Source: Choristocarpus tenellus KU-1152
Taxonomy: Eukaryota; Protista; Phaeophyceae
Assembly: GCA_964200185.2 (NCBI GenBank)
Contig: CAXNAD020000055.1
Location: 1 to 34,144 of the forward strand
DNA length: 34,144 nt
Reading direction: 5' to 3'
Shown here: positions 6,701 to 34,144 of the stretch, one piece after another
How positions within the stretch are numbered: position 1 is the first letter of the stretch
How the letters are laid out: the number at the start of each line of letters is the position of its first letter
Translations under genes and position numbers: made by a program
The notes under the pieces: generated by a model
Seen by the model: only the letters and a program-made list of their open reading frames with translations
The model's database searches: none
Told to the model about the DNA's origin: nothing

Positions 6701-9700
6701 TTTACTTTCACTAAACCGACGGCAGATATTTCCTTATATCTTACAATGTCCCTTTTCATTGTAATTATGTCTATGAAACTAACTGTATCAATGTTCCGAT
6801 CAAAGCTTAGCACAGCTTGCATGTTCTCCTGGCACGTTTGTTCACATACTGCGAATAGATATACGCCCAAGGGGTAATCGTGGATGCCTTAAGAGAAACA
6901 AAACTACATCGTCTGCAACTGAATAATCTAGCTCGGGAAAGAAGAAATATTGCAAAAGTGCACTTAATGTTCGTAGGCACTAGAAACAAAACTTTAGTAG
7001 ATCTAACAGAAGTTCGGATCCCATCTTACCTCCAAGATTTCTTCATAACCCCTCAGTAACTTCGTGAGCTTGCGATGCGACTTTTCAGAGGACTCTGCCA
7101 GTGAGTAGTAAGTCTGTTCGTCCCACCTGCCCCAACCAACAGCGGTTGATTATCAAAGGATGAAAAAGAGAATCAGACATGATATTTCAACATGTTCAAC
7201 TCAATGTATACGAAACTCCCTCAAGCATTAAATGAGTAGATATGAGTCACAATAATTGCGTACAAGTCCACTCACTTGGCCAGTTTGGCTTCCTCCTTCA
7301 GCTTCTTCTCAATTCCTTGACGAACAGCATCTCTCGCTGACGCAACTTCTCCAGCGAACTGGACAACAAAGAGCACAGTAGTAATCACATATACTGAGAC
7401 AAAAAATTGATTCAAAATATTAACACGGAATGGCCGTACTTAACACAATTCAATTTTTTCTCTGTTAACAAGTAGGTACATAACAAAATCACAAGTACCA
7501 TCATCTCCGTAATACGATACAGAACAGAGAAGGAGAGGGTGATACATTAATTACACAGTTGAGTATCGAAAGATACCATCCCATAAAGTACTTCATCAGT
7601 GCAAGTACAAAACTTTTAACTGAACATACTACCAGATCCTCTACCCTCACCTGTGAGTAGTAACGCCATAGACTGTATAACAATGTTCCCAAACTTGAGT
7701 CTTGATTGCCAACATCATCGCATCGAGAAAGTTGGATAGCAAAGACATGGATGAGCTCCAGCCTTGCAAAGAACTCGCCTATCGGGGCTGTACGTAGGAA
7801 AGTGTCCAACGTATCAAAAAGACCTGGAGGGAGAACGACATAAACCTTGATTGACTCTGTGATACATCTAACCAAAAACATTCTTACTCAGCAACATACA
7901 CAGATGTGTGTGTATAGTAGTGCCTAGTCAGCAAAATAATATTTACTACGCGTATACCATTTAATAGAATTTAGTTTATCCTTCAACCTAACTGATGAGC
8001 AGAGAGTAAAGAATCACACTCACGAAGCATCCACCTATTTATAACATAATAAGGGAAAACGAAGTATGGCCGGCAACAAAGACAATCGGTGTTAATCCAT
8101 CAATTGGCAATTACAAAGCATCACGTATGTTTATGAAACTAGAATAACTCCATAGCATGGGAAGATTGGGCTCAGATCCATGAAGCAGTTTCTTCATCAT
8201 GCCATAATTCTCAAGAAAGAACCATATTCAGCGACGATGAAATACTTGGTAGCTCATCATAGCCTCTTCGCACATGACACATGGTTGACCACACTCAACA
8301 CTCTGTAAACAACAAATTAATTTGATCTTCAGTAAATCCAATGGTAAGTGAGACAACACTGCTTGATGTTAATGCAGTTTACATAAACGTGATACAGCAC
8401 CAGATACACAACTCAAACCACAACTCGATCACATGTAATGTTTAAGTTCAAACTCACAAAGCAGTGTTTTCATCACCAAACAATTCTCAAGAGAGAACCA
8501 TGGTCAGCGACGATGAAATACATGTTAACTTATCATAGCCCATTGTTGCTAACAAACCCAAATATTATGTAAACAACCAACATGATCTTCTCTTTGTACC
8601 AGGCGCATGGTCATTTGCAAGTGAGTTCCTATAATGCGCAAAGGTAGATTCAACAATCAGTAAAAAAAAAAAAATAGGGCATGAAACCTACCTTGAGCGT
8701 GCTCCAATCCTCCTCTTTTGCCCATGATTACACTCATTTGTTCAGCTTCAATTTCAGTCTTTGATACAGGCAGTGGTGCATCCGCAGATGTAAGTCCCAA
8801 CCACATCCAATCCCTCCCAGCGAAGCACTCCTGAGCACTCAACCAGTCCACTCTAGGCACTGCGCTCAAGGCATTTGCTTGGGAGTTGATATTTGACAAT
8901 TGAGGTATCTGTGTCATACCTTCACCTTCCTTCAAATTTTCCCAATCACCCAAGAGAAGCCTGTAAAGGTAGAACCACCACCTATGAGCCTTTCAAGAAA
9001 CAAGAGGTACGGTGGACAGCAAGAAGTCTTCAAACAAAATTGCGTGTCATACTTTAAAAAAAAATCAGAGGAACACAACAAGATAAAGATACCCTCGTTA
9101 CAAGGTCATCTGTATATCCCTGAAGCAACCGTTTACAAACCTTCATGGTGTACGATCTCTCCCTTGAATCAAGTAGAAGGGACCAGCTTCGAAGTTCCAA
9201 CGCTCTCCAACGTGTGACAAGGGCACTGAGAGGATTTAGCTCCTCTGACAAGCGTATCCCCCTGTGTGCCTGCTGCTCCCACTCCTGAGCTTTACTGAGA
9301 GTCACCTCCACTCCAGCAAGGACAGCACCCACAGGTGAGTGTAGTGGCATTCTCCTGATGCGATCTGCCACACGAGCCAACTGTATAGCCGAAATGGGAA
9401 AGCGCAGAGAGTATCTTAGAGGGTACAAGTTTCGCCATGTTTGTTTTTTGGGGGCTTGGCCTCCCATGGATTTTTAAAATATATTTTCCTACTCCAAAAC
9501 TATTCGGAGTAGGAAAATTTTCAATATTATGGAAAAGCGTGTCAAGAACAAGGATATTGACATTGACACATCCCAACAAACACGATGACAAACATTACAT
9601 CAAGTACGCAACATTGAACTTTGAAACTCAAATGAAGGAGACCCTACCTACCCTCTAAGGTAGGTTAGCTTCATATGCAGGTGTAACACTAATTCAGATG

Positions 9701-12700
9701 TTTCGATGCATATCAACAAAATTAACCACCAATAGACACTTTACTGTGTCTAACCTGTATCAGAATCCCATGGCCAGGAAACTCGCCGAGAAGCTTTGCC
9801 ACCTTCCCAATGATGCCAGCAAGTGGTTTATCCGCTAGTCTCGTCTCCACCACGTTGGCGTCATGATAAAAGTCCACGAGAGGGTCCACAATCGAAAAAC
9901 TACGCACAACAGACCTGTCAAACACACAAGAACTGACTACACTTTGCCTCATGCCCGACATTTGGCTTTTAAACCGTATCCCTTGAATTTTTGGGTTTGC
10001 CTTCCCCCTATCCATAGTTCCATTCGGAATAGTTCCATTCGGAATGCAGGCTTCTTGGCATGTGTCAAGGAGCAGACTGGAACCAGATGAACAAACCAAG
10101 GAAGCATCAGCCAAAGTCAGCAAATGTGAGCAGGCAAACTCATCCTCGAGGTCCCCCTCAACGTTACAACTCTCAAGCCCATCTGACTCTGTATCAGAGG
10201 CAGCACCAATGTTACCAAGCCTTCTCTCTGTTGACAGAAGAGGTTTTCCATGTAGAGAAAGCAGGGTCGCAGCCCTGTACGATCTTTGAATTGCCAACAG
10301 CCGAGCTGAATCTAGTGTACCATCTTCTACCACAGGTTTCCTGACGAAAACAACCAAAGGTAAGTGTTACGACCTTACACAAAGAGAATGGTTGATCCAA
10401 CATACATATGACAATACACACCCATGATTTTTTTCAACGTGAAGGCAGACACCTCACCTGCTAGCTCCACCGCTTTCCTGAACACCATTGCATAAGCTAT
10501 AGCTTGCCTGCTTTTTCTGGACTGCTGACGTAAGGAAGAGTCGGGCATGTGCCTTAACCAATGAAGACACCTCAGCCTCAGAAAATCGCCCATCAAAAGC
10601 ACCTGCAGAACCTGAGACTACTCCATCAGTGGCCTGATCCTGCTATCAGAATCGAAATTAAAGACCAACCCCATTAGAAAAGGATGCACTATATGCATTT
10701 ATCAATTATCGCTATGCCAACAATTTGCGAAACCTGTGTTTTGCCTCTACCTACATAATCTTAAAAATGATGTATGCCTTGTACATTGAAATCTAAGTGG
10801 TTTAGAAGGAAAAACAGTATCTTACTGACTTTGACACCCTTTGTGTCTATGATCATATCTAAAAATACACGCTCAAGCCTCCAAAAAGATGTGTTAAACA
10901 TAAAATGTACTGTTAGTTTTCCGGAGTTGTTAATATTGAACAGAAAACGAAATTGCTAAAACTTGTATCAGAGGGCATTGAAAACTTAAAACCTACCCAT
11001 CAGTTAAAACTTGCTTAATACGGATAACTATATACCCCACATTGAACCTACCCCCAATTCCATTGAAGGGATTCTGGCCGTTACCTAGTTCTTTCTCATC
11101 ACCCTATTCCCTCCATCCCTCCAAATACCATATCGGAAGGTACACACCTGATCTTCTTCAGGGTTACCAAGTTCGACAGTATAGCCTTCCAATCCGACAG
11201 AGTCATCAAAAATATCGTTATATCCAGCACTGAAGTCAGGAAATAAGGACTTCAACCTTTCTTCCTCTCTCTCCTCATCGCCAACAACCTGGTGAGCACA
11301 GATATATTGAGAAGGTAAAAAAGACAAAGAAAAAAGACAGCTCAGAAATTTTCGAACAAAGTATCTAACACCCACAGCCAGCAAGGCCAATATTTCAAGA
11401 CTTGAGGAATCACGAAGTCGGAACCAAACCAACAACCCAATCGTCAATGAAGACGTTCTCAGTTGGGATATTATCAGTATAAAAGAGCATACACCATAAT
11501 TATTATTGGTCAAAACCTCAGGAGAGCAAGATCAGCAGTAACTATCATCAAACATCTTAATTCTGTATAATAAACCCATGTCACTTCCTCAACCTCTCAG
11601 GGAGTGAAGCGAGACATCAACAAACATACTGAGGTTGAACACTCACTTCAGTGTCCAACAAAATGTATCTTGTGGCATTCCTCTGCTTTAGTCATCAGTG
11701 AAAAAATTAGAGTGAATTGGGCTTGGTAGTCCTCAGAGGAGAGTAGGTCAAGCTTTTCACATCACACGACTCACAGGAAACATGAACAACTGAGAGGTCA
11801 CAACAGTTACAGCATAGATGTTAATGCACACATAACACACATAGGAGTTTAACCAGACATAAGCCATCAGCAAAAAATTAGAGTGTTTTAGAGATGATTG
11901 GTCCTCATTGAGGTAGGATATCATTTTCTCATCATTTGGCTTTGATCTGATCAAAACGGATAGAGCAAAATCATTTTTTTATCAAGACGCATCGTTAAGC
12001 ACCTAATCCTTTTCTGTTTGTATTCGCAACACTGACCGTACATTTTAGAGGGTAGGAACGCGTCATTTGGTGGCCAAAAAAACCTCCAAAATTAATGCCA
12101 TTAGGAAGGCCAGTCACATCTATTCACCACATTTCCAAGACACAAAATGAAGACAGAAAGTTGGATACTTGAGCATTGAGCACCAATGAATAAATAAAGA
12201 GGGGAACTAGTGAGGCCATGGGCATGGAACGCCACACGCCAGCAATCCAGCAGCATTAAAATCTTCTTCATTGTCAACTGAAACCTGTCAAGATGTTAGA
12301 TTGCCCATCCCGTCATGCAGTAATGACCAACCACAAGTCATGAACAAAAAAACTATGTCTACTCACAATATGCTCCTGGACTTTGTACTTGAGAATCTCA
12401 TCCTTCTTTCGCTGTTCTTCAGCCTTTTTTTCCTCAGCCCTAGGATTAACAAGACAAACATGTTTTCACACATTTCAAAGAGTCAAAAGTCTATCGTTAA
12501 TCTGCATCCTGAGATAAGATGTATTCATCTCATGTTGTAATAAACACAAAATATTATATTTCATCAATAATACAGTATTTTCACCTATGCCACTACCACC
12601 ACCTTCGCAAAGTGATACATGTATCAAAATGTGGACTTCTACCAACCATTATTTCTACCTCTTTGCTTAAGCAACTTGGTGGACAGTGCGTTCAATCATA

Positions 12701-15700
12701 CCTTGCCCATGAGTTGACAGCAATCTCCATGGCACTAGCCGCAACCTTCAAGGATTGACGACCACATCCCACAGCCTGATATAGCTCCGCACGACAGAGC
12801 AGCGCCTACAAACGTGTGAACAAATAGTATATCATTGACAAGTTGATCAATAATGTTTCAAGCATTGTAATCACATCCAATATTTGATATTTTTATAGTT
12901 GAAAAAAGAATCAATCAATCAGACTTAGGATAAATGTGTCTAACATTGAAAAACAAACGAGGAAGACAACTCAACTATCAAAAAAAAAAAACAGCACCCA
13001 ACTTTGAAGACTTGAAACACTCTCATTCATTCCAAAGACCACACATTGAGGAAGCACAGGAATGGCAACACAGGCACAATTATTAAGCGCGAAACACCAA
13101 GGCTTACCTCGAGGAGGGCCGCCTGTTGTGCTCTCGCTGCATCACGAAATACGGCCACATTTGGCCTACTCGATGTATCCTCTAGAGGCCAACCTATCAT
13201 TGCACATCTCATGTCCTCTAATCCTCGTGCTAGCTTGTCAAAGGAACCTTTGGCATTATCCCTAACTTCACTTGTCGTATTCAGACCTACGTCAGTACTC
13301 TTGCAGGCGGTATATGGGAAGACCAACAGAGCTTTGTGAAGTACTCGGGAGGAATCCATCGAAGCAGCTTCACTCCCAGGTCCATGGATTGATAGCACTG
13401 GTGAAGACGTATGTCTGGCCTTATGTTGCGTTGTAGACGCCAATAGCCGCAAGCCCAGTCTCATTGTCTCTACAGCCTCACATATTCCAGTGGTAACATC
13501 TAAGTAGGACCAGAACACCTCACGAAGGCGAGTCACAAAGGATCCCGCAGCAGCTTGCCACACTCTCTCCTTCTGAACAGCCTGACCAACGGCATGTGTA
13601 GATTCGCTTGTACCAACCGGTTCCACATTGAACGAGGTATAATTGAACTCTTTGTCTGGTGTCTTCTCCACGATCAGCCCTACTAGGGTTGCAAGCTCCT
13701 GAGTAAGGCCTACAATACGATCTGGAGAACCAATTCCAGTTCCAAAAGAGTGCAGCTCTTGGAAAAGTGATAAGAACGAGGGTCGGTTTATTGGGCGCTC
13801 AATTGCTTCACGCTCCAGCTTGATGGACGTGCCTTTTAGTTCATGAGCAGTTCCTAGCAAAGCATCCACCTCATGGTAGTAGAAGAGAGATGCAAAAACA
13901 TGGAAGAAGGCAATGTTCAGAGACACGATTAATACTCCTGGGAAGAATGAATGGCTTCGGCGCACGTATCGTGGTTGTCCTGCGTGCCTTTACATTTATG
14001 CCTATCACATCATAGTTGAGAGAAGAAAAAGAAATAATGTACCGATTAAGACAATAGACAACATCCTCCTTATAATATACAGTTTGTCACCCCTATAGCG
14101 ACACCTCAACAATAGTATCAAGTACCTAAACTATCATGTTCCACAACACTTGAGTTCCATCACGCAGTGAGTCCACTCCTAGCAAGAAATTCAAGATCAT
14201 GGTTGACCTCTCTGGAAAACGACACATTCAAGAGTCGAGTTGACCTGCGAGTACTGTTGCAAAGCTGCGAACCGACGAAAGGGAACGGAAAGAACTGCGA
14301 CACTGCAAATAATTGCAACCCGCAAAACCCCAATGTGGTGACGTGTTTGCTTCCACTACTACTTACTTGGCCAGTTACAATTCAAGTTCTACCCCCATCT
14401 ACTTCAAGGAGTAACAAAGCTCACCTCAGGACTGGTATCTCCTCTTCCTTCAAGTCTCAGCGCCCACCTACGTGCGGTTAAGTCTAACTTTGCATCCCGA
14501 AGCCGCCTTTCCACCAGGTTCTTCCTCAGAGCTGGCCTCAATCCCGGATCAACAGGTGACATTGGCACAAGCAGATTCATCCTTAAGCAGCCCAACAGTG
14601 CCAGCCCCATCCCTAAAGGAGCACCCACATCCCTTTGCATTCCCTTTGAAAACAACATTGACGCCTTGTGGAGAACAAGAACTGATGGAACAAGAAGTGT
14701 ATTGACATTTTCCTTCAAGTAAGCATTATCACAGATCTCTGAGCCACTCCGAACAGCTTGCTCAAGTTCTCTTGATGTACAGGACATATATTCCCCATTG
14801 CTTAGATCATTCAGATGCTGAAGAGCGTTCAAAAACGCCAATTTCCTCTTAGGCCCTTCCAGCTGCTGAACATCATCCTTGATCTCATGGGCACTAGAAA
14901 TTAAGTCAACATCTTGGACTTCTCTGCCTGCACGTTTTGCAATGTGGGAAGTGCTCAGTATCTTTTCTAGTCCACCCCAAGCCAACGTGAGCAACCCATG
15001 AAGAACACCCCCCTGTTGGTATGACCAGCGTCTCAGCATTCTCATCCCCACCTGAAACTGCTTTCTTCGAGCTTCAGCATTCATCAAAGTCATCAAGCCC
15101 CCCCTTTCTCCAGTAAGACGAAAAAGCTTTGGATCACCTCCAAATGAATGGAAGGAACAAAGACCAAGGATGAAAGATGTTCGAACACACGAGAGCAGAT
15201 GACTAGGACCTTCCACATTGCGATCCGCTCCACACACCACGGCGCCTTCAACATTTATGGGTATGATCGGAGGAGGGGCAAGTTCCGCCGAGAGGAATTC
15301 CAAGGAACTGTACAAATTGATCCAAAGGCGTTTACCCCAACCATCAATCATGACTGGCAACAGTTTTCTCAAGAGTTGCACAAGCAGTAACCTCCAAAGT
15401 TTAGTGCCCTTTGAACAAGCTGCACCATCCTGGTGGTACTTTCTGTCAACAAGGTCAACTCCACACTCAAAATTTTCAGAACCATCACCAGACCAATCCT
15501 CCCTTTTCCATGCATCCCAGGCCCAGAGGAGTGTTTGGTATGGCCGCGCAGTGGAAGGGGGTAAAGAGAGTATTGACAGCATTGCTGATCGAAGCTTCTC
15601 AACACGTTCCATGACAACCCCCACTTGACATGCCGTTCTATCCACATTCCCGCATTCTGTTTCCCTCTCTCCCTCCACCTTCAATGACGAACCTACTAAA

Positions 15701-18700: not shown

Positions 18701-21700
18701 GCATTTACCAGTACTCCATCACACCACTGAAATGACGGTGACGACCTGCCCACTCCATGTCCCACATCAAAAGCAGATGAGCGGACAGCTGATGCCAACA
18801 ACCTCACATTGTGAACGCACCATTCCAGATTTAAAAGCTTGTTCTTGCGTGTACCATCTGCTTCACTGCTGGTGCCACGGTGTAAGTCTTTAAGGAATAC
18901 TGTCGCTGATTCAAGGGCACCTAAGAGCACCTCCACGGTCACAATTCCCTGGATCAGGGAACAACAGCACAGAAGTGGAATCACTAAAAGAAACCTGATT
19001 CATGCAAGTGAGAAATTCCTTCTAGCAGTCTGAGTGTTCCCGAAACAAATACGGGTTGAAAGTAATGATTGGGCAATCATACACAAGAAAATGTACACTA
19101 GATGTGGCTTAACATGTGCGGGTGCACATAAAGCAAACACATGCTGAGAAATGGATATTCTTGACATGTAATTTACACACCTTTACATCAAACCCGGACG
19201 TAGCTGAACATCCAATGCCTGCATCATGAGAGAGTGGAGAAATGTAGGATCTCCTGACAGCCTCCCACGCATCCCATGCACATCTCGTGAGTTGGGATGT
19301 TCTCACCTGCAACACCCAAAAAAACACAAGAGCAGATCATAGTGGGTCACAACATCTCATCACAATCATTACTATATCCCAATGACTTCAATATCACCAG
19401 AGAATGGATGTCAGAACATACAACTCAAAATAGAGGTTGCAATCCCATCTCAGTTAAACTGTGTTACTGTAACCTGTCTTATGCGCACATTGCTACTAAC
19501 AGAGAGTAAGGAAAAGTTTTCTTGACGATTTATCATCTTGCCACAAAATACGGTTTAAAGTTAGTTGAATATTAGGAGGGCTTACCTTTCTCTCTGCTTC
19601 AACAGCATTAGCAGGGACGCTCTCAGGAGACATCAAAAATAGACACACTTGCTCTGTTACTCCCTGGAGTTTTTGTCGCAACTCAGCATGCCTTGATCTG
19701 GAATCTACCTGTTGTATGATTATAAAAATTGACGCCACTTCAGAGTGTATGATGTTGGGATTCACAGAATCATCAGAAAGTCAAACAAAATTTTGGTCTT
19801 CCAGTATGACCATCAACATTCTATAGCAAACATGCTAGTCCAACAAGAATTCAAGCAAATGTAAGCATGACATCAAAGATCATGTCCATCATGACGACAA
19901 CTTTTCAGCTGCGTGACACGAACGTGTAAAAATGACATGCTCGCCCTCCTCAACAACAGTTTCACCCACACCTTTGCAGGAGTAAAGTTTACAAGTTTTG
20001 AAAAGGGATCGATTGAATTTTCCCTGGGTTTGACAACCACCAGGCCACGGGAAAAAGACCACGGCGGATAACACACCTGGGTGTCTGAGGCATAACACAA
20101 GAATCTCTACTTCGCCACCCATAACAACACATGTTAGAAAAAAATGAGGGGTTAAGGAGGTAACTGCAATTGCCTAATAGGGTAGGTAACACTTAAGTTT
20201 TTTGTGCAGCACAATATTATAAGCAACGAACTTTTCGAATTTCCAACGATCACAAGAGAAAGAACCAAAGGTTTTACAGGATGAGCAACTCTCGACATAA
20301 AAAGAGCACCTTAATCCTTTGTAAGGATTCTCACATAATGTTCATAAAAAAAAATTATCCAGAAGGAAAAACCCGGTCTTCTTTTGCACACTCTTATTCA
20401 CAGCAGAAATTAGTCTCCTTGTTCTTAACTCAACGGGATTTAGTCCTGTAAAATAATTACACCAATTACTGATAATGCATATTCTATGGCTGGGCTGTTT
20501 AGGAATATATCTATTACAGAAGTCAGAACCAGTCCTATTAATCCCATAAACAAGAATGAACCCAATCCTGTTAAATCCTTACCAGTGGAATAGCCGTATA
20601 GACTCATACCGCCAAACATAGCAGAGCATACAAAGAAAGTTCTAGCTATTGACGCTCCTGTATAAATTATACCCTAGTGCTGCCATTCTCAAAATTCACC
20701 CCCAAGTACATGCACCAGCCCAATGAGAAGTATTTGAAATTTTTCAAATCATTACGAACGAAATAGTAGCCACATGCCCATCTTGGGTGAAGTGTTAGTC
20801 TCTAGAGACTTGGAAATGACTAGAAGGAACACAAAAATTACACTTAAAATCATCCTGACCTCTACTGAGGTGTTGAGTTGATCATGTGCCAGATTCAACA
20901 TGATGGGTGAACTTAGCACTTTCATCTAAAACAAGAGGGAATGGTGATGAGCCTACATCGACCGTGGCGCAAGTTCCTTCAAATTATCAATTCATGCAAC
21001 ACAATGGATTTACATCTGCAAGTCACAAATATCTTACCTGCTCATAGCATCCAAGCAGCTCCGAAATGTCAGTGGCAGGTGACAGGGCGACCTCTCGCAA
21101 CACAGCCCCAACTCCTGTTGCCAATGATCGGACCAGTGATGTCTTCCCTGTACCACGGTGACCAACAATAAGACTTGGCCACCCCATATTAACACACCTG
21201 AAAGATAGGGTGAGGATGAGACTTTAACTTGCAACGAATCACCAAGTCCACACCTCATCTCTAAAGATCCATGTTTCTATTCTCAAGTTATATCATCTTG
21301 CTCAGCACAGCTCGGAAGACAATTAGCAATAGTTCGCACCAATAGTTCAAAAGCACACTGAACAAGACAACCCCATCGAATAGTTCAACAATAAACACCA
21401 ACATATTACCACTCAAAGTCACAGAAGAGCAAATCCCAGGTACAGTGTGTAACAAGGTCGACTTCCGCAAATGGCATGCGCTTTTTCCATTCACATCCTC
21501 GTAAGCTCTACTCTTATAGGCAAACAAACAAGAGATTTGGATGCTTTGATTGCACCAGCATTGATTGGTACCTCAGGCAGTCTGTCCAAATCAATAGGCA
21601 TTAGCCTCACTAGAACTTGATTAACCCACACAAGAGACCAGGTCAATGAACTGTGCCCATTCACCTTTTAAGGCACAGTCCAGGCATCACTGGCCATGTC

Positions 21701-27700: not shown

Positions 27701-30700
27701 AGTATTCTTACCTGAATTGCAGAGATGATATCCTTCACAGTCCCAGATTCCATAACTGGTTGATCCCTGTCTTTTGATAGATCTGCAACATTTTCCACCC
27801 TAATCCCAGCACACATCTCTAAAAACAAGGTAGCCCTATCCCGCAGTTCTTTCACAAGTAAATCACGTCCACGAAGAGGCCTTAGACCTCCTAGAAGATC
27901 TGCAGCTTCTGTGTTTTGATGGCAATTGACAACATGCATCCTGACACCATCCAGCGCCACACAACATAGTAGACAACGAAGTGGGTTGTGTGGGGATTGT
28001 TAACTGTACATAAAATCAAGCCCACTCATAGAACACTGTTTATCAACAGGCTTACAATGTTAGTAACAAGTGCCATCCTGTTGGACCTGTGTTTGATGCA
28101 GCTATTGAGTCAACTAGGTCCATCAAGTGTGTTGACGAACCAACAAACTTGGCATGAAAGTCAAGAAGACTCTTGCAATGCACACAGAACATCTTAACAC
28201 CTCGATATTACTTTCGTAGGTGCTCAGTCACAATCTTGACTGAGCACATAGGAAAAGAACATGAGTGGATGTACTTCTGTGATTGGGGAGTTACTTCCTA
28301 CCACTGTCTGTTACATTCGTGCCACAGAGTAGAAATGCATGTCCTTCATGCACCAGGGACAAGTCATTATTCATGTACAAAGAAAAAAACAGTTTCTCCA
28401 TGTCAGGAAGAACGACTCACTTAATATCAAGCTACACAACAGATGTCAAATTTCATCACCTCCTCCCAAGAAGAGTAGAATAAAGTTGGCAAACAGTTGT
28501 CTTTCCGCAACCTGTCTCTCCAACTAGTAGAACAGGTTCCAAATTGGAAAGGCACCTCCCTACCAGTCGGAAGAGTCTCCGCATATGCCTGCCAACGTTA
28601 GCGAGACAAAGCGAGATAGGGAAAGTATTACACAAAATAATTAAACTAGATTGATGCTTGTCTCTCTGAAGTCATATATCTCTACATAAATTTATCACAA
28701 TTTCTGCACATTTGTCCTTGCCAAGATCCCACCACAAAAACCAAAAAATGACATTTTTATGAGGGCATGGTAACTTAACATATGCTGGCACGAATATTAC
28801 AATTTTCCTAGCTCAGCTAATGAGATTCCAAATCAAAATCCTCATCGTGCCTCTCACTACAAGAGGACAAAGGAAAAATGATATTTGCATCACTGCCAAG
28901 AAAACAACAAGGATATAGTAGAGCACAAAATTATAGTAATTACAAAAATTGCAAACCATCACAATTTCAAAATTTTCGTGATAAACCTCTTTTTAACTGA
29001 CAGATGTTCAGGCTCAGCAGGTGGTAAAAAATTGAGATTCCATGTTTTTTCATCCCCAGCAATACGCACAACACGTCTTTGTCGGAGTCCCTAACTTTTC
29101 GCATCATAGCCTTCACTTGTGAACGATTCATTGCAAACACATAAAAATCACACTTTTTTATCACACTTGTCAAAGTACAGGCTCAGAGATTAACCCTAGT
29201 TATGTAGGGCAAAATTGAACACAACAGAATTGTTCTGGAAGGCACAAACTGTATTCAGGCTCAGTAAATGGTTAATTTGAGATTCCGTGCGGGTTTATCC
29301 CCAATGATACGCACTACACGCCTCATACGGATGTCCCTAACTTTTCACATCACAGCCTTTTTACAGACCTTCAAAGCCTTTACATGAAAAAGGGGAATAT
29401 GAAACATTTCATCTATTCAATTATTGACATGTAGCATTTATCCTCTACAAAAATCAACCAGGGCACTTGACTCTAGTAACCACCATGTGCTGTAATGCAT
29501 GGTCAAACAGATAGGAATACGCTGTTGGATATTCCCTAGTTGCTAGGAGGTTATCCTTAACATTTTCCTTAATCTGGGGTCGTAATACTCTAATGAAAAC
29601 TTTAAAATAAATTCGTGTTTGAGGCTAGAGGAAAACAAGTCAGGAGTATGGTGTGCTTATAGAATATTTGGAATATATATGCTCACACACATTGAACATA
29701 GAATATCATGAGAATCAAACTCTACATAAAGAGTGCATGGTGTCAAGATGTAGGTGATAGACCTTCCACACTGAAAGGGATAGATATAATTACCTTGTCA
29801 GAGCTACTCCCTCCAGACCAGCTTCAGAACCCATCCCCTTATCTAGCATGTCCTGCACCAAGAGAAGCTGAGCATGGTTTCCGAGCCTTGTGTCAGCAAG
29901 CTCTTCCTCCTGATCATGCTTCAATGAGACATCCACACTACTATACAATGCCTCTGTGTCAATGGACACTCCAAGCTTTTAAACAAAGTTAGAAAAGAAG
30001 ATGTGATCAGCTTCAACACACAGAACACTTGAAAAATGAGCAAGCATAAAATATAGCTTCATCTGACAATATATGCTATCAATCTATCATCACTATATAG
30101 AGGGGAAAAAGTCATTCATAGTGAAATATTTAACAATTAAACAACTTAATTTAACAATTCTTTTTCTATTATCTCTATTTTTAAACTACACACCTTTTCC
30201 TCCAGCACGTTTTTCATCTCCATTTTTTCTTCTTCTCTCCTTAGCCTCTCAGCCAAAAGCATGTATCTGTCAAAAGGTGACATCAAACTACTTCAGATCT
30301 ACAATACCTCGGCGGTCATGAAAATGCTAAACATTCTACAACAATACTGTTATCATTGCATATTGTTTGTCGTGGGGGTAACTGTGTAACAAATTAATAA
30401 GAAATGTAGCCTTCCTCAAACAGCGCAGTCAGGGCGTGACCCCTGACATGCCTCCACCAGACCCCCCCCAAAAAATAGTGTATGCCTCCCGTCTATCAAA
30501 TTCCACCTACAACCAAAGATCTGCTGCCCTAGTAGCACTCTTGAACATGTCTCATTGAACACTGTATGTTTACCTCAAACCCTTTTGGTGTTGAGTGGGA
30601 ACAGGGTTGTGAGACAAATGGACAAGAACTAAGGGCAACAGGTGCAGTAAGGTCATTTATGAAACAAATGAGAGACTTCCAGCACACAAGTAGAGGGCGT

Positions 30701-32023
30701 CATTAAAGTGTAGAGGGTTGAGCAGATGGCTGATTGATCTTGCTGGGCATGAAACGGACCATGAGGCATGGGTCAAAAGCCTTCCCCACGGTTAGCTGGG
30801 CCAGCATACATGTTCAAATGCGTGTTTTATTTCACCATTTCGGTGTTGGCAGTTGTCAGAACTAGTCCCCACTTTTTAACATACACAGCCTATTCTAAAC
30901 AAAATGTAATACTGAAAAATGGGGCGCAATTTTTCTTACCCTTCCTCAGCCAGTTCTTGTTTTCCTTGTGGTGATCTTCCCGCCCATCGCAGCAAGTCTC
31001 GAGGTGATATCGGTCCATGCTTTCCCAAAAAGAGTCGACTTGTTTGCCGTCTGGCCTGGACATAAATATGCAGAAAAACCGTAACAAAGGTGATATGCGC
31101 ATTTTTTTTATTAATTACAGCAATAGCATTGTGAATCACTAATTAATCAACTCCAGCTAGATCAATTAGTGTAGCTTAACTATAGTATTGATCGGTTCAC
31201 AACACCCATGACACTTAAATGAGATACAACTTTCAAATATAAAATCCAGTGCCTTCTTTATGAACATTAAAGAACTAACCTGCAAATCCTGCAGCACACC
31301 CACCAGCAGCTTACAATGACTAGGAGGAACTCCACATCTCTTTTCCAATATGGTCTCCCACTCCTCGCCAGGTATATCACCCACATGAACCTGATCCGGT
31401 TTTCAAGACCGTTCCATGAAAGTATTTCCAAACGTATGTGAACTAGAGTTCCAGATCAGGTGGGTAATGCACGAAACGGTCAAGGTCATGGAGGATTCTG
31501 ACATTTAGAATCGCAGATTTTGATCGATTATACTGCTAAAACTTAAGTCTAAACACCTCCCTGATTCTATCCATTTCGTACTTGGACTGTAAGTGACCAT
31601 CATAATTTGCGTACCTCCAAGAACCTGTTCCTGAAAGCTCTTGAAAGTGGCTTACGCCCACCATATACTCCAGGGGGGTTTTGAGTCGCAAAAAGGCGGA
31701 AGGCAGGATGCGGTTTGATGATCTCTTGGGTTTCAGAGAGGAAGAGTTCTCTGTTGTTATCAAGGACTCGATTTAGAGCCTCAAGAACCTGTATGCAAAC
31801 AGAGAAGACAACAACTGTTGGTATCTTAACAATTGTGCATCACTCCAAGTCTTGATTCAGGAGTAAAACAGTGATCTTCTGTAAGAAGCGCTCTGATATG
31901 AAACACTTGAAATACAACAGTTCGGATATGTTTCCATTGGTCACTTCTTACCTCTGAAGGGGCGAGGTTAAGTTCATCAAGGATGATCCAGTAACCTTGT
32001 CGTAGTGCTTGCACTAACACCCC
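449..32023 (-). CDS. MDN1: Midasin (Rea1) AAA+ ATPase, partial multi-exon gene (43 exons in window, 4,910 codons; both ends outside the window)
   Basis: Tandem AAA motifs: WIILDELNLAPSE; GETGCGKT/LLLLDELSLA/ATMNPGGDFGKRELSPALRSRF; GSPGVGKT/WVLLDELNLA/AAQNP; GHRGTGKT. These are followed by the linker (LFPDF, WWFYLY, KWDEQTYY) and the D/E tail (GTGMGEGEG). Exon phases are compatible throughout. Confidence 0.97.
991..1163 (-). CDS. MDN1: MDN1 exon, D/E-rich tail (ELDREMG...VVDEKMWD)
   Basis: tag acceptor, gtaag donor; midasin-type VDEKxW motif. Confidence 0.92.
1479..1549 (-). CDS. MDN1: MDN1 exon (GLEMENDFDGELFDIPK)
   Basis: tag/gtgagc; EMxxDFDG motif. Confidence 0.92.
1693..1846 (-). CDS. 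MDN1: MDN1 exon (FDDDVEGTGMGEGEGKKDVSDQIEDEEQ)
   Basis: cag/gtgaga; conserved GTGMGEGEG. Confidence 0.95.
2143..2265 (-). CDS. MDN1: MDN1 exon (GKLHYVIVRVFRTLLSKGLC)
   Basis: aag/gtacat; motif at the end of the linker. Confidence 0.92.
2433..2548 (-). CDS. MDN1: MDN1 exon (YDAASAAIISLC...IAFSK)
   Basis: cag/gtgagg; phase 1/0 fits neighbours. Confidence 0.82.
2772..4146 (-). CDS. MDN1: MDN1 exon, linker
   Basis: Within 471-aa ORF; cag/gtgagt. Confidence 0.9.
4458..4589 (-). CDS. MDN1: MDN1 exon (AKRADYYYLKSL)
   Basis: cag/gtaaca; phase 0/0. Confidence 0.88.
4722..5546 (-). CDS. MDN1: MDN1 exon, linker (KKRAVLDLLSELKKQGLS)
   Basis: Within 338-aa ORF; cag/gtgagg. Confidence 0.9.
5976..6113 (-). 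CDS. MDN1: MDN1 exon (VSSAEVLHG...MVKK)
   Basis: cag/gtaaca; open frame, phase 0/0. Confidence 0.8.
6542..6695. repeat. Dispersed ~150-bp intronic repeat, copy 2
   Basis: Same orientation and blocks as 259-410. Confidence 0.8.
7030..7126 (-). CDS. MDN1: MDN1 exon (WDEQTYYSLAESSEKSHRKL)
   Basis: cag/gtaag; conserved motif. Confidence 0.93.
7276..7358 (-). CDS. MDN1: MDN1 exon (IEKKLKEEAKLAK)
   Basis: cag/gtgagt. Confidence 0.92.
7651..7823 (-). CDS. MDN1: MDN1 exon (FLRTAPIGEFFARL...RYYSQ)
   Basis: cag/gtgagg; GEFxxRL motif. Confidence 0.92.
8169..8264 (-). ncRNA. Box C/D snoRNA, SNORD102-like guide (LSU rRNA)
   Basis: GGCT-ATGATGA(C)...GTATTTCATCGTCG-CTGA(D')...ATGATGA(C')...CTGA(D)-GCC. 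All four boxes are canonical and there is a terminal stem. Confidence 0.88.
8446..8540 (-). ncRNA. Box C/D snoRNA paralog of 8169-8264 (partly degenerate)
   Basis: C=ATGATAA, identical D' guide plus CTGA, C'=GTGATGA, D=TTGA. Confidence 0.65.
8692..8989 (-). CDS. MDN1: MDN1 exon (AHRWWFYLY...)
   Basis: aag/gtaggt. Confidence 0.87.
9141..9380 (-). CDS. MDN1: MDN1 exon (KAQEWE...RWRALELRSW)
   Basis: cag/gtttgt; conserved WRxLEL. Confidence 0.93.
9755..10340 (-). CDS. MDN1: MDN1 exon (DFYHDANVVE...EFPGH)
   Basis: cag/gttaga. Confidence 0.9.
10458..10642 (-). CDS. MDN1: MDN1 exon (tandem TAGCAG acceptor, 10642 or 10639)
   Basis: Open frame, gtgagg donor, phase 0/2 fits. Confidence 0.78.
11148..11288 (-). 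CDS. MDN1: MDN1 exon (EERLKSLFPDF)
   Basis: cag/gtgtgt; conserved LFPD motif. Confidence 0.88.
11690..11771 (-). ncRNA. Box C/D snoRNA, 18S rRNA guide (copy A)
   Basis: AGTCG/TGACT stem, C=GTGATGT, D'=CTGA. The 16-nt D guide CACTCTAATTTTTTCA is antisense to 18S UGAAAAAAUUAGAGUG. Confidence 0.8.
11863..11940 (-). ncRNA. Box C/D snoRNA, 18S rRNA guide (copy B)
   Basis: GCCA/TGGC stem, C=ATGATGA, D'=ATGA, D guide AACACTCTAATTTTTT-G-CTGA. Confidence 0.87.
12367..12439 (-). CDS. MDN1: MDN1 exon (AEEKKAEEQRKKDEILKYK)
   Basis: tag/gtgagt; phase 2/0. Confidence 0.87.
12702..12805 (-). CDS. MDN1: MDN1 exon (ALLCRAELY...NSWAR)
   Basis: tag/gtatga; phase 0/2. Confidence 0.82.
13108..13869 (-). CDS. 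MDN1: MDN1 exon, linker (acceptor probably GAG)
   Basis: Within 312-aa ORF; gtaagc donor. Confidence 0.85.
14425..18514 (-). CDS. MDN1: MDN1 giant exon (4,090 nt): end of AAA6 and proximal linker
   Basis: SVLDRLNPLLE...PHPNFRLFLT...GEVSRAMRNRCVEI; cag/gtgagc. Confidence 0.95.
18647..18948 (-). CDS. MDN1: MDN1 exon, AAA6 Walker B region (FQWCDG...WLLLDGANLC)
   Basis: cag/gtgagg. Confidence 0.93.
19181..19306 (-). CDS. MDN1: MDN1 exon, AAA6 insert
   Basis: cag/gtgtgt; phase 0/0. Confidence 0.75.
19586..19708 (-). CDS. MDN1: MDN1 exon (VDSRSRHAEL...)
   Basis: cag/gtaagc; completes EQ|VD motif. Confidence 0.87.
20441..20673 (-). pseudogene. Fragment of a bacterial Bax inhibitor-1/YccA-family membrane protein gene (Rickettsiales-like), frameshifted, intronic
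   Basis: Hand translation GIIYTGASIARTFFVCSAMFGGMSLYGYSTGKDLTGLGSFLFMGLIGLVLTSVIDIFLNSPAIEYALSVIGVII-[1-nt deletion]-TGL. There is an in-frame stop upstream and codons mostly end in A/T. Confidence 0.85.
21038..21197 (-). CDS. MDN1: MDN1 exon, AAA6 Walker A (GHRGTGKT...TDISELLGCYEQ)
   Basis: cag/gtaag. Confidence 0.95.
22247..22849 (-). CDS. MDN1: MDN1 exon (GGAWEFNLRDVFRW...YVQRMR)
   Basis: tag/gttggt; AAA5 lid motif. Confidence 0.93.
23174..23349 (-). CDS. MDN1: MDN1 exon (VFVDAL...KMIRFN)
   Basis: aag/gtgaaa. Confidence 0.92.
23564..23740 (-). CDS. MDN1: MDN1 exon, AAA5 (VLEGLNSCLDHR...GRKGLPKSFLSRFTK)
   Basis: cag/gtaag; highly conserved. Confidence 0.96.
23942..24175 (-). CDS. MDN1: MDN1 exon, AAA5 (RINLSEQTD...WVLLDELNLASQ)
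   Basis: cag/gtaata. Confidence 0.96.
24397..24750 (-). CDS. MDN1: MDN1 exon, AAA5 Walker A (LLEGSPGVGKT)
   Basis: cag/gtgaac. Confidence 0.95.
25075..25362 (-). CDS. MDN1: MDN1 exon (SIRDLLGW...LDGLG)
   Basis: cag/gtaag. Confidence 0.93.
25755..25889 (-). CDS. MDN1: MDN1 exon (VWVP...MLDFAWWF)
   Basis: tag/gtaaat. Confidence 0.92.
26115..26193 (-). CDS. MDN1: MDN1 exon, AAA4 (ATMNPGGDFGKRELSPALRSRFTE)
   Basis: aag/gtgagg. Confidence 0.96.
26512..27203 (-). CDS. MDN1: MDN1 exon, AAA4 insert and Walker B (acceptor uncertain; GC donor)
   Basis: FEWADGPL...LLDELSLAEDAVLERLNSVLE; the phase-0 acceptor at 27203 is inferred. Confidence 0.85.
27712..27940 (-). CDS. MDN1: MDN1 exon (VNCHQNTEAADLLGGLRP)
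   Basis: cag/gtaag. Confidence 0.95.
28460..28588 (-). CDS. MDN1: MDN1 exon, AAA4 Walker A (EPVLLVGETGCGKTTVCQ)
   Basis: cag/gtgatg. Confidence 0.96.
28810..28897 (-). ncRNA. Candidate box C/D snoRNA, LSU guide
   Basis: C=GTGATGC, C'=ACGATGA. The D guide GGAATCTCATTA-G-CTGA matches LSU UAA(C/U)GAGAUUCC. Short terminal stem. Confidence 0.6.
29010..29112 (-). ncRNA. Candidate box C/D snoRNA (pair, copy A)
   Basis: AGGCT/AGCCT stem, C=ATGATGC, D=CTGA; elements GTTAGGGAC and GGAATCTCA shared with copy B. Confidence 0.68.
29257..29358 (-). ncRNA. Candidate box C/D snoRNA (pair, copy B)
   Basis: AGGCT/AGCCT stem, C=GTGATGT, D'=ATGA, D=CTGA; collinear with 29010-29112. Confidence 0.68.
29794..29975 (-). 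CDS. MDN1: MDN1 exon (LGVSIDTEALY...GVALTR)
   Basis: aag/gtaatt; phase 0/2. Confidence 0.87.
30194..30266 (-). CDS. MDN1: MDN1 exon (YMLLAERLR)
   Basis: cag/gtgtgt. Confidence 0.94.
30940..31055 (-). CDS. MDN1: MDN1 exon (FLGKHGPISPRDLLRWA)
   Basis: cag/gtaag. Confidence 0.95.
31280..31390 (-). CDS. MDN1: MDN1 exon (DIP...ILEKRCGVPPS)
   Basis: cag/gttagt. Confidence 0.94.
31615..31788 (-). CDS. MDN1: MDN1 exon, AAA3 (VLEALNR...FATQNPPGVYGGRKPLSRAFRNRF)
   Basis: cag/gtacgc. Confidence 0.96.
31952..32023 (-). CDS. MDN1: MDN1 exon, AAA3 Walker B (WIILDELNLAPSE)
   Basis: cag/gtaag. Confidence 0.96.
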
Positions 32024-32162
32024 CTGGCCGAAACAAGACATGGACGGAAACGTGACAACATAAGGAATATAGATTAGAACTGAAGGAACATGGAGAAACT
32101 CTTACACAGAAACATGCAGATCAATGCAGAAAGAAGAAACGAAGATTACCTTCCTCAAGGCT

Positions 32163-32272
32163 TGCTGGATTAGAATCAACTGGTCACCTCTGGCTTGACG
32201 GGGACAGCTCTTTCGAATTAAACCATGGTCGATCTTGTAAGGGGAAAGAAGACTTTTTCATCATTTCCAGCA
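32163..32272 (-). ncRNA. Box C/D snoRNA array copy 1 (snR190/SNORD12-like; box D mutated to CTAA)
   Basis: TGCTGGA/TCCAGCA stem, C=ATGATGA, guide GTCTTCTTTCCCC. Confidence 0.65.
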
Positions 32273-32490
32273 TCAGAAATAGTTGGTGTCTACTGACGTA
32301 TTCAGCATCAAGTCTATTTGTAGACTTGGGACTTGCATACACTAGTACTTGCAAAGTTAGTGAGCACACACACACTAGGCAATTTTCACAAATTATAAGT
32401 TGGTGAGGTGTAATGGACAAGGGAAGACATCGACTCCCTTCACGCTCAATACAAGAGAGAAATTTGACACTGAGCACACAGAATGCAACA

Positions 32491-32603
32491 CTGGATCAGA
32501 GTTGACCAGTCACCCTCTGGCTTGTCGGGGCTGGCTCTTTCATAATAAAAAAAAACCATGGTCGATCTTACATGGGGAAAGAAGACTCTCTCATCATCTC
32601 CAG
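32491..32603 (-). ncRNA. Box C/D snoRNA array copy 2 (snR190/SNORD12-like)
   Basis: CTGGA/TCCAG stem, ATGATGA, GTCTTCTTTCCCC, CTGA. Confidence 0.83.
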
Positions 32604-32693
32604 ATAGGCGCATCACCAAATAATCATTCACATAACTAAGCAGACTCCAAACAGAACCTCTTCAATGTTGCACTGTAATTTATTTTCTTAATC

Positions 32694-32803
32694 ACTGGAT
32701 CAGAATCAACCTAGCACCTTCTGGCTTGGCAGGGCCGGCTCTTTCATACTAGAACCATGGTCGGTATTACATGGGGAAAGAAGACTTTCTCATCATTTCC
32801 AGT
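32694..32803 (-). ncRNA. Box C/D snoRNA array copy 3 (snR190/SNORD12-like)
   Basis: ACTGGA/TCCAGT stem, ATGATGA, GTCTTCTTTCCCC, CTGCCAAGCC, CTGA. Confidence 0.85.
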
Positions 32804-32983
32804 TCCTTGATAAAATGTGACAAATCTTTCTGACGTAGTAGTTTCGCTTTCATCAAGACAAGCTACCAAACTAAGCTAATGAAAATCCTTTCAAGGTCTC
32901 CCATGTATGCTACCCTGGCAAGTGACAAGGCTTTGGTCAGAAACAAAATACTGAAGGATCTTTGAGGCTCACTCTTGTAGTAC

Positions 32984-33088
32984 TGGATCAGAATTGACCA
33001 AACACCCTCTGGCTTGGCGGGGTTGGCTCTTTCCGATATAACCATGATCGATCTTCCATGGGGAAAGAAGACTTTATCATCACATCCA
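32984..33088 (-). ncRNA. Box C/D snoRNA array copy 4 (snR190/SNORD12-like)
   Basis: TGGA/TCCA stem, GTGATGA, GTCTTCTTTCCCC, CTGA. Confidence 0.83.
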
Positions 33089-33394
33089 TACCATCAAAAG
33101 TGTGCTATATGATCATTTAAAATTGTGGCTAAGAACTTACTGAAGTCTTACTGTTTAGAAGTACAAGAATCAGATAGGTGATTTGTTCTTTCTCCAAAAA
33201 AATCCAGGTCATTGGTGTGGGCAATGACAAGCATAGTCTATCAATACTTCAGACACTGCAGAAGAGATTTAGCAGACCTTCTCCATTGGCAGAAAGAAGT
33301 AGATGTTTGTCTATGTGTGACAAGTAGCTTATCTACCACACTATCAAGAACATAATGGAAAAGAGGTGAATGACCCAGAAACACACAAGAAATC

Positions 33395-33524
33395 TCGATC
33401 AGAAAATGTTCCATGGTGTATCTTCAAGAACTTGTCTCAAGCATTGAAGGTGTTGTCAAGCACCCCACATTGCATGGTAAAGGATTGCAGAACAGGTCTC
33501 CAAGATGTTTTTTCATCACATCGA
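33395..33524 (-). ncRNA. Box C/D snoRNA, LSU guide (antisense to CAGGUCUCCAAG)
   Basis: TCGA/TCGA stem, C=GTGATGA, 12-nt guide CTTGGAGACCTG, D'-like CTGC, D=CTGA. Confidence 0.75.
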
Positions 33525-33664
33525 AATATTTCCCACAGTTTCTAAAGCAGGGTTTGATGAGACTTCAAAAAGGACATTCTGTATTTCCTAGAAACTACAC
33601 AAGCTTTCTCTTTGCATCATAGTTGATTCAGTAGCGTAAAATGTGCATTGGGGCTCTGCAAAAA

Positions 33665-33831
33665 TCGATCAGATAGTGGTGCATGTTGAATCATCAATAT
33701 CAGGCACCAAACATGAGAACTGAATAGGCAAAACTACACTTCTCAGCGTAGAATTTGTGACCCAATCAGTCTGCATATGGCTACCATTTACAGAACAGGT
33801 CTGTGATATGGATCTGTTTTCCTCACATCGA
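33665..33831 (-). ncRNA. Degenerate paralog of the 33395-33524 snoRNA
   Basis: Same termini (TCGATGTGA...TCTGATCGA), C=GTGAGGA, partial guide AGACCTGTTCTG. Confidence 0.45.
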
Positions 33832-34144
33832 CATTCACAAAAAAAAAACATTAGCAGTACATCAACAACATTGATGTTGGGCACAGTGCACAAGATGTCG
33901 AAAAAATCTTCATTGCAACATGTTCATATTGAATCATATCCAAAGAGTAATACCACATCTTTATATGACACCAAGCATAATAGTATACTGATACCTTTGA
34001 CGTGTCTTCCTTTAGCATGAGAATGATGCCATGCTACATTTTATATTGGCCAATATCAAAACTCCATCTTTATCAGTCTGATACTTTCTAATTTCTGGCT
34101 TATTATATTCCCATAATTCCTTTGAACTTAAATCTGCCAAATTA

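Follow-up and report, generated by a model that had tools for sequence, protein, structure and literature searches.

Contig CAXNAD020000055.1 of the alga Choristocarpus tenellus KU-1152 (assembly GCA_964200185.2; 164 Mb and 27,310 contigs searched) was analysed along its entire 34,144 nucleotides (nt), hereafter called the window, which appears from its exons to contain most of the gene encoding the ribosome-assembly ATPase Midasin (MDN1, also known as Rea1). We consider it highly probable that this gene acts as a host for multiple small nucleolar RNAs (snoRNAs), with introns that carry sense-strand arrays of box C/D units alongside H/ACA-like elements, and with arrays that have grown by local duplication. 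Altogether, 13 box C/D units from five families were identified on the minus strand, where they are distributed as two, two, three, and six units across four MDN1 introns (A, B, C, and D, respectively; Table 1). Because matches to a strict box C/D pattern are biased toward this strand, guides form duplexes with ribosomal RNA (rRNA), and the units recur in the MDN1 genes of relatives, we regard them as real genes. Judged on these sequence features, they represent genuine, unannotated intronic snoRNA clusters from which mature RNAs are predicted.

Box C/D units in MDN1 introns

A previous sequence-only reading of the window had placed about 13 box C/D units in four introns of this gene, all on the sense strand of the host and mostly with terminal stems. 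The introns and their 2, 2, 3, and 6 units were recovered here with the same boundaries (GT..AG ends could be read for three, and the fourth intron ends at 32024), every unit lies in an intron on the host sense strand, and a spliced RNA contig supports two of the introns. Most units also have a terminal stem, and the stems covary between lineages (see below). The proposed number of units held in that 13 were found, although boxes are intact in only about 11, those of A1 and D4 being damaged. The C and D boxes are perfect in six units (D1-D3, E2, B1, and A2), and five others (B2, C1, C2, C3, and E1) have a one-base variant of the C box. A1 is probably a decaying copy and D4 is possibly disabled; both may by now be dead copies, and the working genes probably number 11 rather than 13.

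Table 1. Positions of host introns, box C/D units, and H/ACA-like elements in the window
Feature	Position	Strand	Description
Host intron A	7824..8691	-	868 nt; GT 8691-8690, AG 7825-7824; flanked by Midasin exon open reading frames; units A1, A2
Host intron B	11289..12366	-	1078 nt; GT 12366-12365, AG 11290-11289; units B1, B2
Host intron C	28589..29793	-	1205 nt; GT..AG ends; spliced joint 28587>29793 in the RNA contig of run X3; units C1-C3
Host intron D	32024..34144	-	>2.1 kb, stops at the contig end (34144); AG 32025-32024; units E1, E2, D1-D4
A1	8450..8541	-	Terminal boxes degenerate (C ATGATAA, D GTGA); D' guide and D' CTGA intact
A2	8168..8264	-	Canonical; C 8260-8254, D' 8231-8228, C' 8200-8194, D 8175-8172; GGC/GCC terminal stem
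B1	11861..11941	-	C 11935-11929, D 11870-11867
B2	11689..11771	-	B1 paralogue; C GTGATGT 11765-11759, D 11698-11695
C1	29255..29359	-	C GTGATGT 29353-29347, D 29264-29261; AGGCU/AGCCU stem
C2	29008..29113	-	C1 paralogue; C ATGATGC 29107-29101, D 29017-29014
C3	28807..28899	-	C GTGATGC 28893-28887, D 28816-28813
E1	33663..33832	-	Double-guide, long (~158 nt box to box); C GTGAGGA 33826-33820, D 33672-33669
E2	33393..33525	-	Resembles E1 at both ends; C 33519-33513, D 33402-33399
D1	32982..33089	-	snR190/SNORD12-like; C 33083-33077, D 32991-32988
D2	32694..32802	-	snR190/SNORD12-like; C 32796-32790, D 32703-32700
D3	32490..32603	-	snR190/SNORD12-like; C 32597-32591, D 32499-32496
D4	32165..32270	-	snR190/SNORD12-like; D box CTAA 32173-32170
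F2	19969..20082	-	H/ACA-like; fifth intron, upstream of the 1365-residue exon; 5' hairpin with pocket, H-box-like AAAUUC
G	30740..30806	-	Hairpin with internal pocket, then AGAUCA (H-box-like); intron 30267-30939, spliced joint

A strict search pattern (RTGATGA, CTGA, and a stem of at least 4 base pairs [bp]) matched the window six times on the minus strand and not once on the plus strand, compared with 0.46 matches on average and at most 3 in 200 shuffles. When the pattern was relaxed to accept one mismatch in a C box that is followed after 45-170 nt by a D box, the two being flanked by a stem of 4 bp or more, there were 35 matches on the minus strand versus 3 on the plus strand; C/D-like matches within exons were treated as chance. 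Members of the D, A, and C families were recovered by a repeat finder as direct repeats, with A1 and A2 forming one such family at 76% identity. Alignment of the four D copies gave 83% identity within the unit and 30% in the flanks, with conservation beginning and ending at the terminal stem. This matches the earlier claim that paralogues keep their boxes and guides while their surroundings drift. The same comparison for D1-D3 (units 83% and flanks only 30% alike) argues for purifying selection on several copies.

The window contains no match to any Rfam family at gathering thresholds, and the Rfam comparison suggested with the sequence-only reading yielded sub-threshold leads alone, for example, a 30-bit match of B1 to snoR16, together with weak matches of B1 to SNORD73 and of C3 to snoR1. 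Its expectation that the RNAs are unannotated is borne out, in that these thresholds miss every unit. Three further candidates were rejected. B3 (11557-11453) and F1 (19901-19767), the latter with a weak SNORD11 match, are not conserved and have no convincing layout. A 50-nt mini-unit on the minus strand (~11590-11650) combines an AACCUC/GAGGUU stem with UGAUGU, a 13-nt guide, and CUGA, and has a 13-bp match to the 5' region of large-subunit (LSU) rRNA in one reference; it is not conserved in relatives and is probably a chance occurrence or a decayed copy.

Guides and predicted rRNA targets

To identify targets, the 20 nt that precede each D or D' box were compared with mature rRNA from three independent reference ribosomal DNAs (rDNAs), with the fifth nucleotide required to lie inside the duplex, and significance was assessed using 200 shuffled versions of each guide. 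Both B units pair with the A-run of 18S rRNA adjoining UUAGAGUG (the snR53/Am796 region), where the D guide of B1 forms 17 bp and that of B2 forms 16 bp at the same site in a register one nucleotide off (none of the 200 shuffles reached the duplex in either case). E1 carries two 18S guides. Its D' guide, followed by CTGT, forms 15 bp with AACA[G]GUCUGUGAUG (the snR56/U25 site; 0/200 shuffles as good), and its D guide forms 13 bp with GUGG[U]GGUGCAUG (the snR55/U33 site; 1/200 as good). For LSU rRNA, the D' guide of E2, followed by CTGC, forms 15 bp with CA[G]GUCUCCAAGGUG (in the stretch CAGGUCUCCAAGGUG), and the D guide of C3 forms 13 bp with UUAA[U]GAGAUUCC (in the stretch UUAAUGAGAUUCC), with no shuffle as good for either. 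These duplexes of 13-17 bp involve rRNA regions that are conserved in the three independent eukaryotic rDNAs. D1-D4 each carry a 13-nt box A with perfect complementarity to LSU GGGGAAAGAAGAC in helix 73, again in all three references.

The 5' guide of C1 pairs with LSU UGUCCCUAACU such that the target position is the first C of UGUCCC (yeast Cm2337, snR64), with CCGU/CCGA as the D' box. This duplex is 11 bp long, was obtained with one reference only (L081), and was equalled by 13 of 200 shuffles, which is not significant by itself; an aim at C2337 is therefore suggestive. C1 and C2 also share a 9-10 nt element (29281-29289 and 29036-29044, respectively) complementary to LSU GAGAUUCC. The rRNA stretch concerned lies 5 nt upstream of that paired by their 5' guide, and the element recurs within the D guide of C3. 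Possibly it takes part in accessory base pairing, as described by van Nues et al. 2011 (PMC3116282). For the A family, the D' guide has a 14-bp LSU match in a single reference (L033), which adjoins GUGAAAUACC on its 5' side in LSU domain V, in a stretch that varies among eukaryotes.

Overall, the best or likely target is LSU rRNA for 10 of the 13 units (the A, C, and D families and E2) and small-subunit rRNA for three (B1, B2, and E1), in keeping with the proposal that the guides are mostly LSU-directed. The LSU match falls in a conserved stretch for D1-D4, E2, and C3, and comes from a single reference rDNA for A and C1/C2. Based on these pairings, 2'-O-methylation is predicted in 18S rRNA at two adjacent A residues beside UUAGAGUG, at the G of AACA[G]GUC, and at the U of GUGG[U]GGUGCAUG, and in LSU rRNA at the first C of UGUCCC, the U of UUAA[U]GAG, and the G of CA[G]GUCUCC. 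Equivalences to yeast and human sites derive partly from published tables and partly from our own counting along the references. The yeast table assigns Gm1428 to snR56, Um1269 to snR55, Am796 to snR53, and Cm2337 to snR64, and lists Gm2395 as "?snR190", with methylation not detected (PMC5344495). Yeast numbering was counted along one reference rDNA (L069), assuming no length difference from yeast within the stretch; only one frame fits the base identities at 2337, 2395, 2417, and 2421, and in this frame C2337 is the first C of UGUCCC and G2395 the third G of GGGG.

Comparison of the D' guides of E1 (33794-33808) and E2 (33493-33507) shows a common core beside the D' box and a different 5' part, and the E2 form is kept in both relatives described below. 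E2 looks like a guide that was retargeted after duplication, whereby an E1-type 18S guide would have come to address the 15-bp LSU site in CAGGUCUCCAAGGUG while retaining its core.

Conservation in the MDN1 genes of relatives

We compared the window with MDN1 loci on a 463-kb contig (L127 and L129, two parts of the same contig), in a second relative (L128), and in a more distant one (L136; 22% protein identity). The L127/L129 protein is 42-44% identical to the brown-alga group, and that of L128 is 55% identical to the Ectocarpus protein. Exon protein of the window is 29-30% identical to all of its search hits, which share 42-93% identity among themselves; by protein similarity, the alga of the window thus appears to lie outside the sampled brown algae. 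These values also exclude contamination by the same organism as a source of the relatives' loci.

The A, B, C, and D families and the E2 form all occur on the sense strand of MDN1 in L127/L129 and L128, and the order of the window is kept. In L129/L127, this order is E2-like, seven D-like, C1-like, C3-like, two B-like, and A-like units, with the D-like units immediately preceding the exon matched by window positions 32026-31945 and the B-like units following the exon matched by 12410-12361. L128 has a B unit, an E2-like unit, and another B unit in the intron following the latter exon, and three A-like units downstream. Flanking exons place the D, B, and A families in orthologous introns; for example, the exon directly upstream of intron B aligns to L127:15331-15379 and L128:14571-14640. 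The sequence-only reading had left conservation of boxes and guides in orthologous introns to be sought in related genomes, and it was found.

Individual orthologues could be recognized for most families. B1 has orthologues in L127, L128, and L136. The C1 orthologue is L127:471-564 (C2 aligns to L127:471-562), and that of C3, with the same guide and D box, lies near L127:802 (L129:10731). E2 is matched by L128:15062-15104 (93% identity) and L129:715. In a BLAST comparison of the window with the relatives' loci, each aligned block was a coding exon or a snoRNA unit, so that apart from the A units, which were missed, only snoRNA units aligned among the non-coding sequence; by motif search, the 13-nt D' guide of A2 followed by CTGA was also found at L127:22227 and at L128:20054, 20901, and 21041. 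In L136, a single B-type unit with its own CUCC/GGAG stem occupies a 190-nt intron at the exactly orthologous position. An intron-poor MDN1 locus (L135) showed no guide motif in a snoRNA-like setting. The window, L127, and L128 all have both the B1-type and the B2-type register (one- and two-nucleotide spacing from guide to D box), which argues that two adjacent A residues are served by dedicated paralogues.

The terminal stems provide additional evidence of conserved structure. In the D family, CUGGA/UCCAG is replaced by GUUCGA/UCGAAC, with 91.7% of cells paired and compensatory changes in three of six pairs. The B-family stem has 92.9% of cells paired and double changes in five of six pairs (slid controls, 17-57%); across both families, slid controls were 15-57% paired. 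Taken together, the comparisons indicate that these snoRNAs were already associated with MDN1 before this alga and the brown algae diverged.

Copy number and copies elsewhere in the genome

Copy numbers differ among lineages. There are four D units in the window versus seven in L129, and the B intron holds one unit in L136, two in the window, and two plus the E2-like unit in L128. D copies from the same genome share lineage features, such as the stem sequence, and those of the window also share a 2-nt insertion between box A and AAGA; in the relative's array, three copies spaced at 340 nt are nearly identical. Lineage-specific numbers and likeness within lineages fit repeated local tandem duplication or concerted evolution, consistent with the local expansion proposed from the window alone. 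The orthologous intron of L129 (1582-6881, plus strand) is longer than 6 kb and contains the seven snR190-like copies at spacings of ~1300 and ~340 nt; the copy near 6174 has lost its D box.

Two families have copies on other contigs of the assembly. A D-like copy on contig C52 (~9339-9452; L132 1503-1611, minus strand) is 86% identical to D4 with CTGA intact, and the open reading frames near it have no Pfam match. An E1-like copy on contig C8833 (L133 ~1500-1700, minus strand) keeps both guides and boxes while its interior has diverged (71% overall identity).

Host gene structure and transcription

All long open reading frames of the window are on the minus strand, and those of the exons match the Pfam AAA_5 and Midasin AAA lid domains. 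The exon at 14404-18501 (1365 residues) has counterparts of the same length at ~30% identity, one of which is a partial protein from Ectocarpus fasciculatus. Three sequencing runs contain this locus as contig sets in which RNA ends are not visible, and one of these (X3) is clearly spliced RNA. A 12.4-kb contig from X3 skips 28588-29792 as well as five neighbouring minus-strand GT..AG introns, showing that MDN1 is expressed and that the skipped introns are spliced; it has a loose end at 32025. RNA contigs hence support two of the snoRNA introns, namely intron C, through a spliced joint, and intron D, through a loose end at its 3' boundary, and unspliced contigs span the clusters.

Neither the window nor the rest of the assembly yielded the exon upstream of intron D. 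The last ~100 bases of the contig (34040-34144) match contigs C9493 and C2653 and coincide with a depth spike, indicating that a repeat ends the contig at 34144. In runs X1 and X2, the E1-like paralogue of contig C8833 is matched by an odd 90-nt joint (33697>33788) and by two loose ends (33664 and 33807), all of which look like products of chimeric contigs rather than of splicing. Separately, contig C1 of the assembly has two inverted plastid rRNA operons (43548-43570 and 115344-115366) with adjacent intron-less trnI-GAU and trnA-UGC, and is plastid DNA of a non-land-plant alga; the organism is therefore photosynthetic.

H/ACA-like elements

Two further intronic elements resemble H/ACA snoRNAs. 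F2 gave the best Rfam lead in the window, a match to the H/ACA family snopsi18S-1377 (30.2 bits, gathering threshold 48, E = 0.096). A 75-nt block of F2 (20081-20013) is 84% identical to the syntenic L127 intron (L127:8110-8184), and the fold is shared with that relative, including three compensatory pairs in the 3' hairpin; the relative reads AAAUUA for AAAUUC. G has no Rfam match, and is 82% identical to L129:8950-9009, with a shared fold. Both have a conserved 5' hairpin with a pocket, while the 3' hairpins show little conservation and neither element yielded a clear ACA box. On these features, F2 and G are probable H/ACA snoRNAs, G being a candidate 5' half.

Alternative explanations

Several observations weigh against MDN1 as a multi-snoRNA host. 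The target rDNAs were complete units from metagenomic eukaryote contigs and not the alga's own rRNA. A pattern search of the assembly found no intact nuclear rDNA, with universal 18S and LSU motifs either absent or in degenerate fragments; nuclear 18S is present as short, degenerate, interrupted fragments only (contigs C1725, C10314, C9714, and C8705), which are 74-79% identical to eukaryotic 18S over longer stretches, and the assembly seems to lack intact rDNA. The D guides of A2, C1, C2, and E2 have no target in the reference rDNAs, and the targets of the A family and of the C1/C2 5' guide are weak or confined to a single reference. All permissive Rfam scores are far below gathering thresholds, the box consensus has been lost in A1 (ATGATAA, GTGA) and D4 (CTAA), and the distance between box A and the D'-like AAGA is two nucleotides greater in the window D units than in the relatives or the human consensus. 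Furthermore, in the spliced run intron depth is lower than exon depth, and the D-like and E1-like copies on other contigs indicate that MDN1 is not the sole source of these families.

Alternatively, the units could be real genes of which each intron has just one or a few that yield a stable RNA, the remaining tandem copies being young duplicates in decay; the gene would then be less of a polycistronic source than its 13 units suggest. The damaged boxes of A1 and D4 would fit, as would the one D copy of seven in the relative that lacks a D box and the variation in copy number among lineages, which suggests fast turnover. Nonetheless, eleven units combine intact boxes, stems, and guides, the difference between D1-D3 units and their flanks points to purifying selection on several copies, and both B registers have been kept in three genomes, and we therefore think it unlikely that most copies are decaying. 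Less likely still is that the clusters have their own intronic promoters, or belong to separate non-coding transcripts, with MDN1 being merely a safe harbour. Polycistronic clusters of this independent kind predominate in plants, Chlamydomonas, and Euglena (PMC7671301), although such clusters would not account for a shared orientation: the 13 units, the two H/ACA-like elements, and all orthologues across the four genomes lie on the sense strand of the host. The orthologous-intron position is also deeply conserved, the 190-nt intron of L136 is too small for a promoter, and unspliced contigs cross the clusters; we regard independent transcription as improbable.

That the units are not functional RNAs at all, having arisen as C/D-like motifs by chance or as a short repeat family (for example, a non-autonomous mobile element) that inserted into MDN1 introns, seems hardly tenable. 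The lack of any Rfam family at gathering score and the copies of two families on other contigs are compatible with such an origin, but neither chance nor a repeat is consistent with the strand bias relative to shuffle controls, guide duplexes with rRNA that fall in the correct register, syntenic placement in orthologous introns at a host protein identity of ~22-30%, or compensatory changes in the stems. MDN1 as a host for multiple working snoRNA genes is, accordingly, the reading that we favour.

Proposed production and function of the snoRNAs

Under a multi-snoRNA host arrangement, RNA polymerase II would transcribe all units within the MDN1 pre-mRNA, and core snoRNP (small nucleolar ribonucleoprotein) proteins would assemble on the C/D kink-turn and terminal stem of each unit in the nascent intron. 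Because two to six units share one intron, and given the precedent of plant and yeast polycistronic precursors, we infer that an endonuclease cuts the intron between units, after which exonucleases would trim the pieces back to the protected stem. The guides would then direct 2'-O-methylation at the predicted sites, with B1 and B2 acting on the two adjacent A residues of the 18S A-run, E1 on the 18S snR56 and snR55 sites, C1 and C2 on the LSU snR64 site, and C3, E2, and the A family on other LSU sites. The four D copies would bind LSU helix 73 through their perfect 13-nt box A. Enlargement of the arrays by local tandem duplication would have taken place independently in each lineage.

The D family may function as a placeholder or chaperone rather than as a guide. 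Box A ends exactly at the fifth position, and the D'-like box of the window copies is weak (AAGA, or AATA in D2). Given the 2-nt displacement of box A, it is doubtful that the snR190 position is methylated. Were the D family to act as a guide, methylation would be expected at or close to the first G of GGGGAAAG.

Midasin strips assembly factors from pre-60S particles, and it is conceivable, if rather doubtful, that its link with these snoRNAs is a selected functional coupling and not a frozen accident. If so, the MDN1 pre-mRNA would supply the multi-copy, snR190-like helix-73 placeholder and guides for neighbouring LSU domain V sites in fixed proportion, such that one promoter could tune both early rRNA folding and late large-subunit remodelling, and this coupling would have arisen before brown algae and their ochrophyte relatives diverged and persisted ever since.

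Comparison with known snoRNA systems

Multiple snoRNAs per intron, tandem-duplicated isoforms, and ribosome-biogenesis hosts are established in plants and Chlamydomonas (PMC7671301). The MDN1 clusters resemble those of plants (rice and Arabidopsis) and Chlamydomonas in having several C/D genes per intron on the sense strand, as units that need separation from a precursor, and are unlike them in the identity of the host (MDN1), in belonging to an ochrophyte alga, and in a host association that is conserved across very divergent relatives. Intronic snoRNAs of animals occur one per intron and are freed by splicing, debranching, and exonuclease trimming. The units described here are likewise on the sense strand in a ribosome-biogenesis gene, and the layout of L136, with its one B unit, is exactly of the animal kind; in contrast, the two to six units per intron in the window are not releasable by exonuclease trimming of a single lariat. 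The type of arrangement is hence already known, and what is new is the lineage, the ochrophyte algae, in which snoRNA organization is essentially undescribed. A literature search found no description of it in stramenopile algae beyond software predictions for Ectocarpus, which were used as a read filter (PMC4513859), and searching full texts turned up no publication in which MDN1 is named as a host gene for snoRNAs.

For the algal lineage, these snoRNA genes are probably the first to have been curated. As Rfam-based annotation misses all units, maps of non-coding RNAs and of rRNA modification in ochrophytes, including brown algae, are likely to be systematically incomplete. The host association was kept while the linker exon fell to 22-30% identity, whereas snoRNAs are usually thought to be mobile between hosts. 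The locus also exemplifies growth from a single snoRNA per intron to tandem arrays, a conserved pair of registers one nucleotide apart (B1/B2), and a guide switch from 18S to LSU rRNA (E2).

Several families have recognizable counterparts. B1 and B2 are similar to yeast snR53 (Am796) and plant snoR16 (RF00296) in forming 16-17 bp at the 18S A-run beside UUAGAGUG, and differ from these in being two paralogues whose D-box spacing differs by one nucleotide, with two adjacent targets predicted. E1 is similar to yeast snR56/human SNORD25 and to snR55/SNORD33, in that both of its guides are in the Rfam consensus register, for the equivalents of Gm1428 and Um1269. It is unlike either in carrying both guides on one long RNA (~158 nt), with GTGAGGA as the C box and CTGT as the D' box, and its scores are far below threshold.

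The D units correspond to the SNORD12 consensus (RF00581) in their 5' half, where they share the C box, a U-rich stretch, CCCC, and GAUCGAC.AUG, with box A also covered by the alignment, and score 18.0-22.6 bits (the best being D3, at 22.6) against a SNORD12 gathering threshold of 43. In yeast, box A of snR190 pairs with a helix 73 sequence, and the RNA is a folding chaperone and not a methylation guide (PMC8536666). Box A of the D units is complementary to the same helix 73 site, GGGGAAAGAAGAC, around yeast G2395 (PMC8536666, PMC5344495), and its possible pairing with a downstream GAAAGA resembles the internal stem of snR190. No counterpart of snR190 box B, which pairs with LSU domain I, was detected as a conserved duplex of at least 11 bp beyond chance across 119 rDNA loci, and box B may be yeast-specific. 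While snR190 and SNORD12 are single genes, the D family comprises four tandem intronic copies in the window and seven in the relative. This four- to seven-copy array suggests that a helix-73 binding RNA exists beyond the fungi and animals from which snR190 and SNORD12 are known, and the chaperone role could be tested there.

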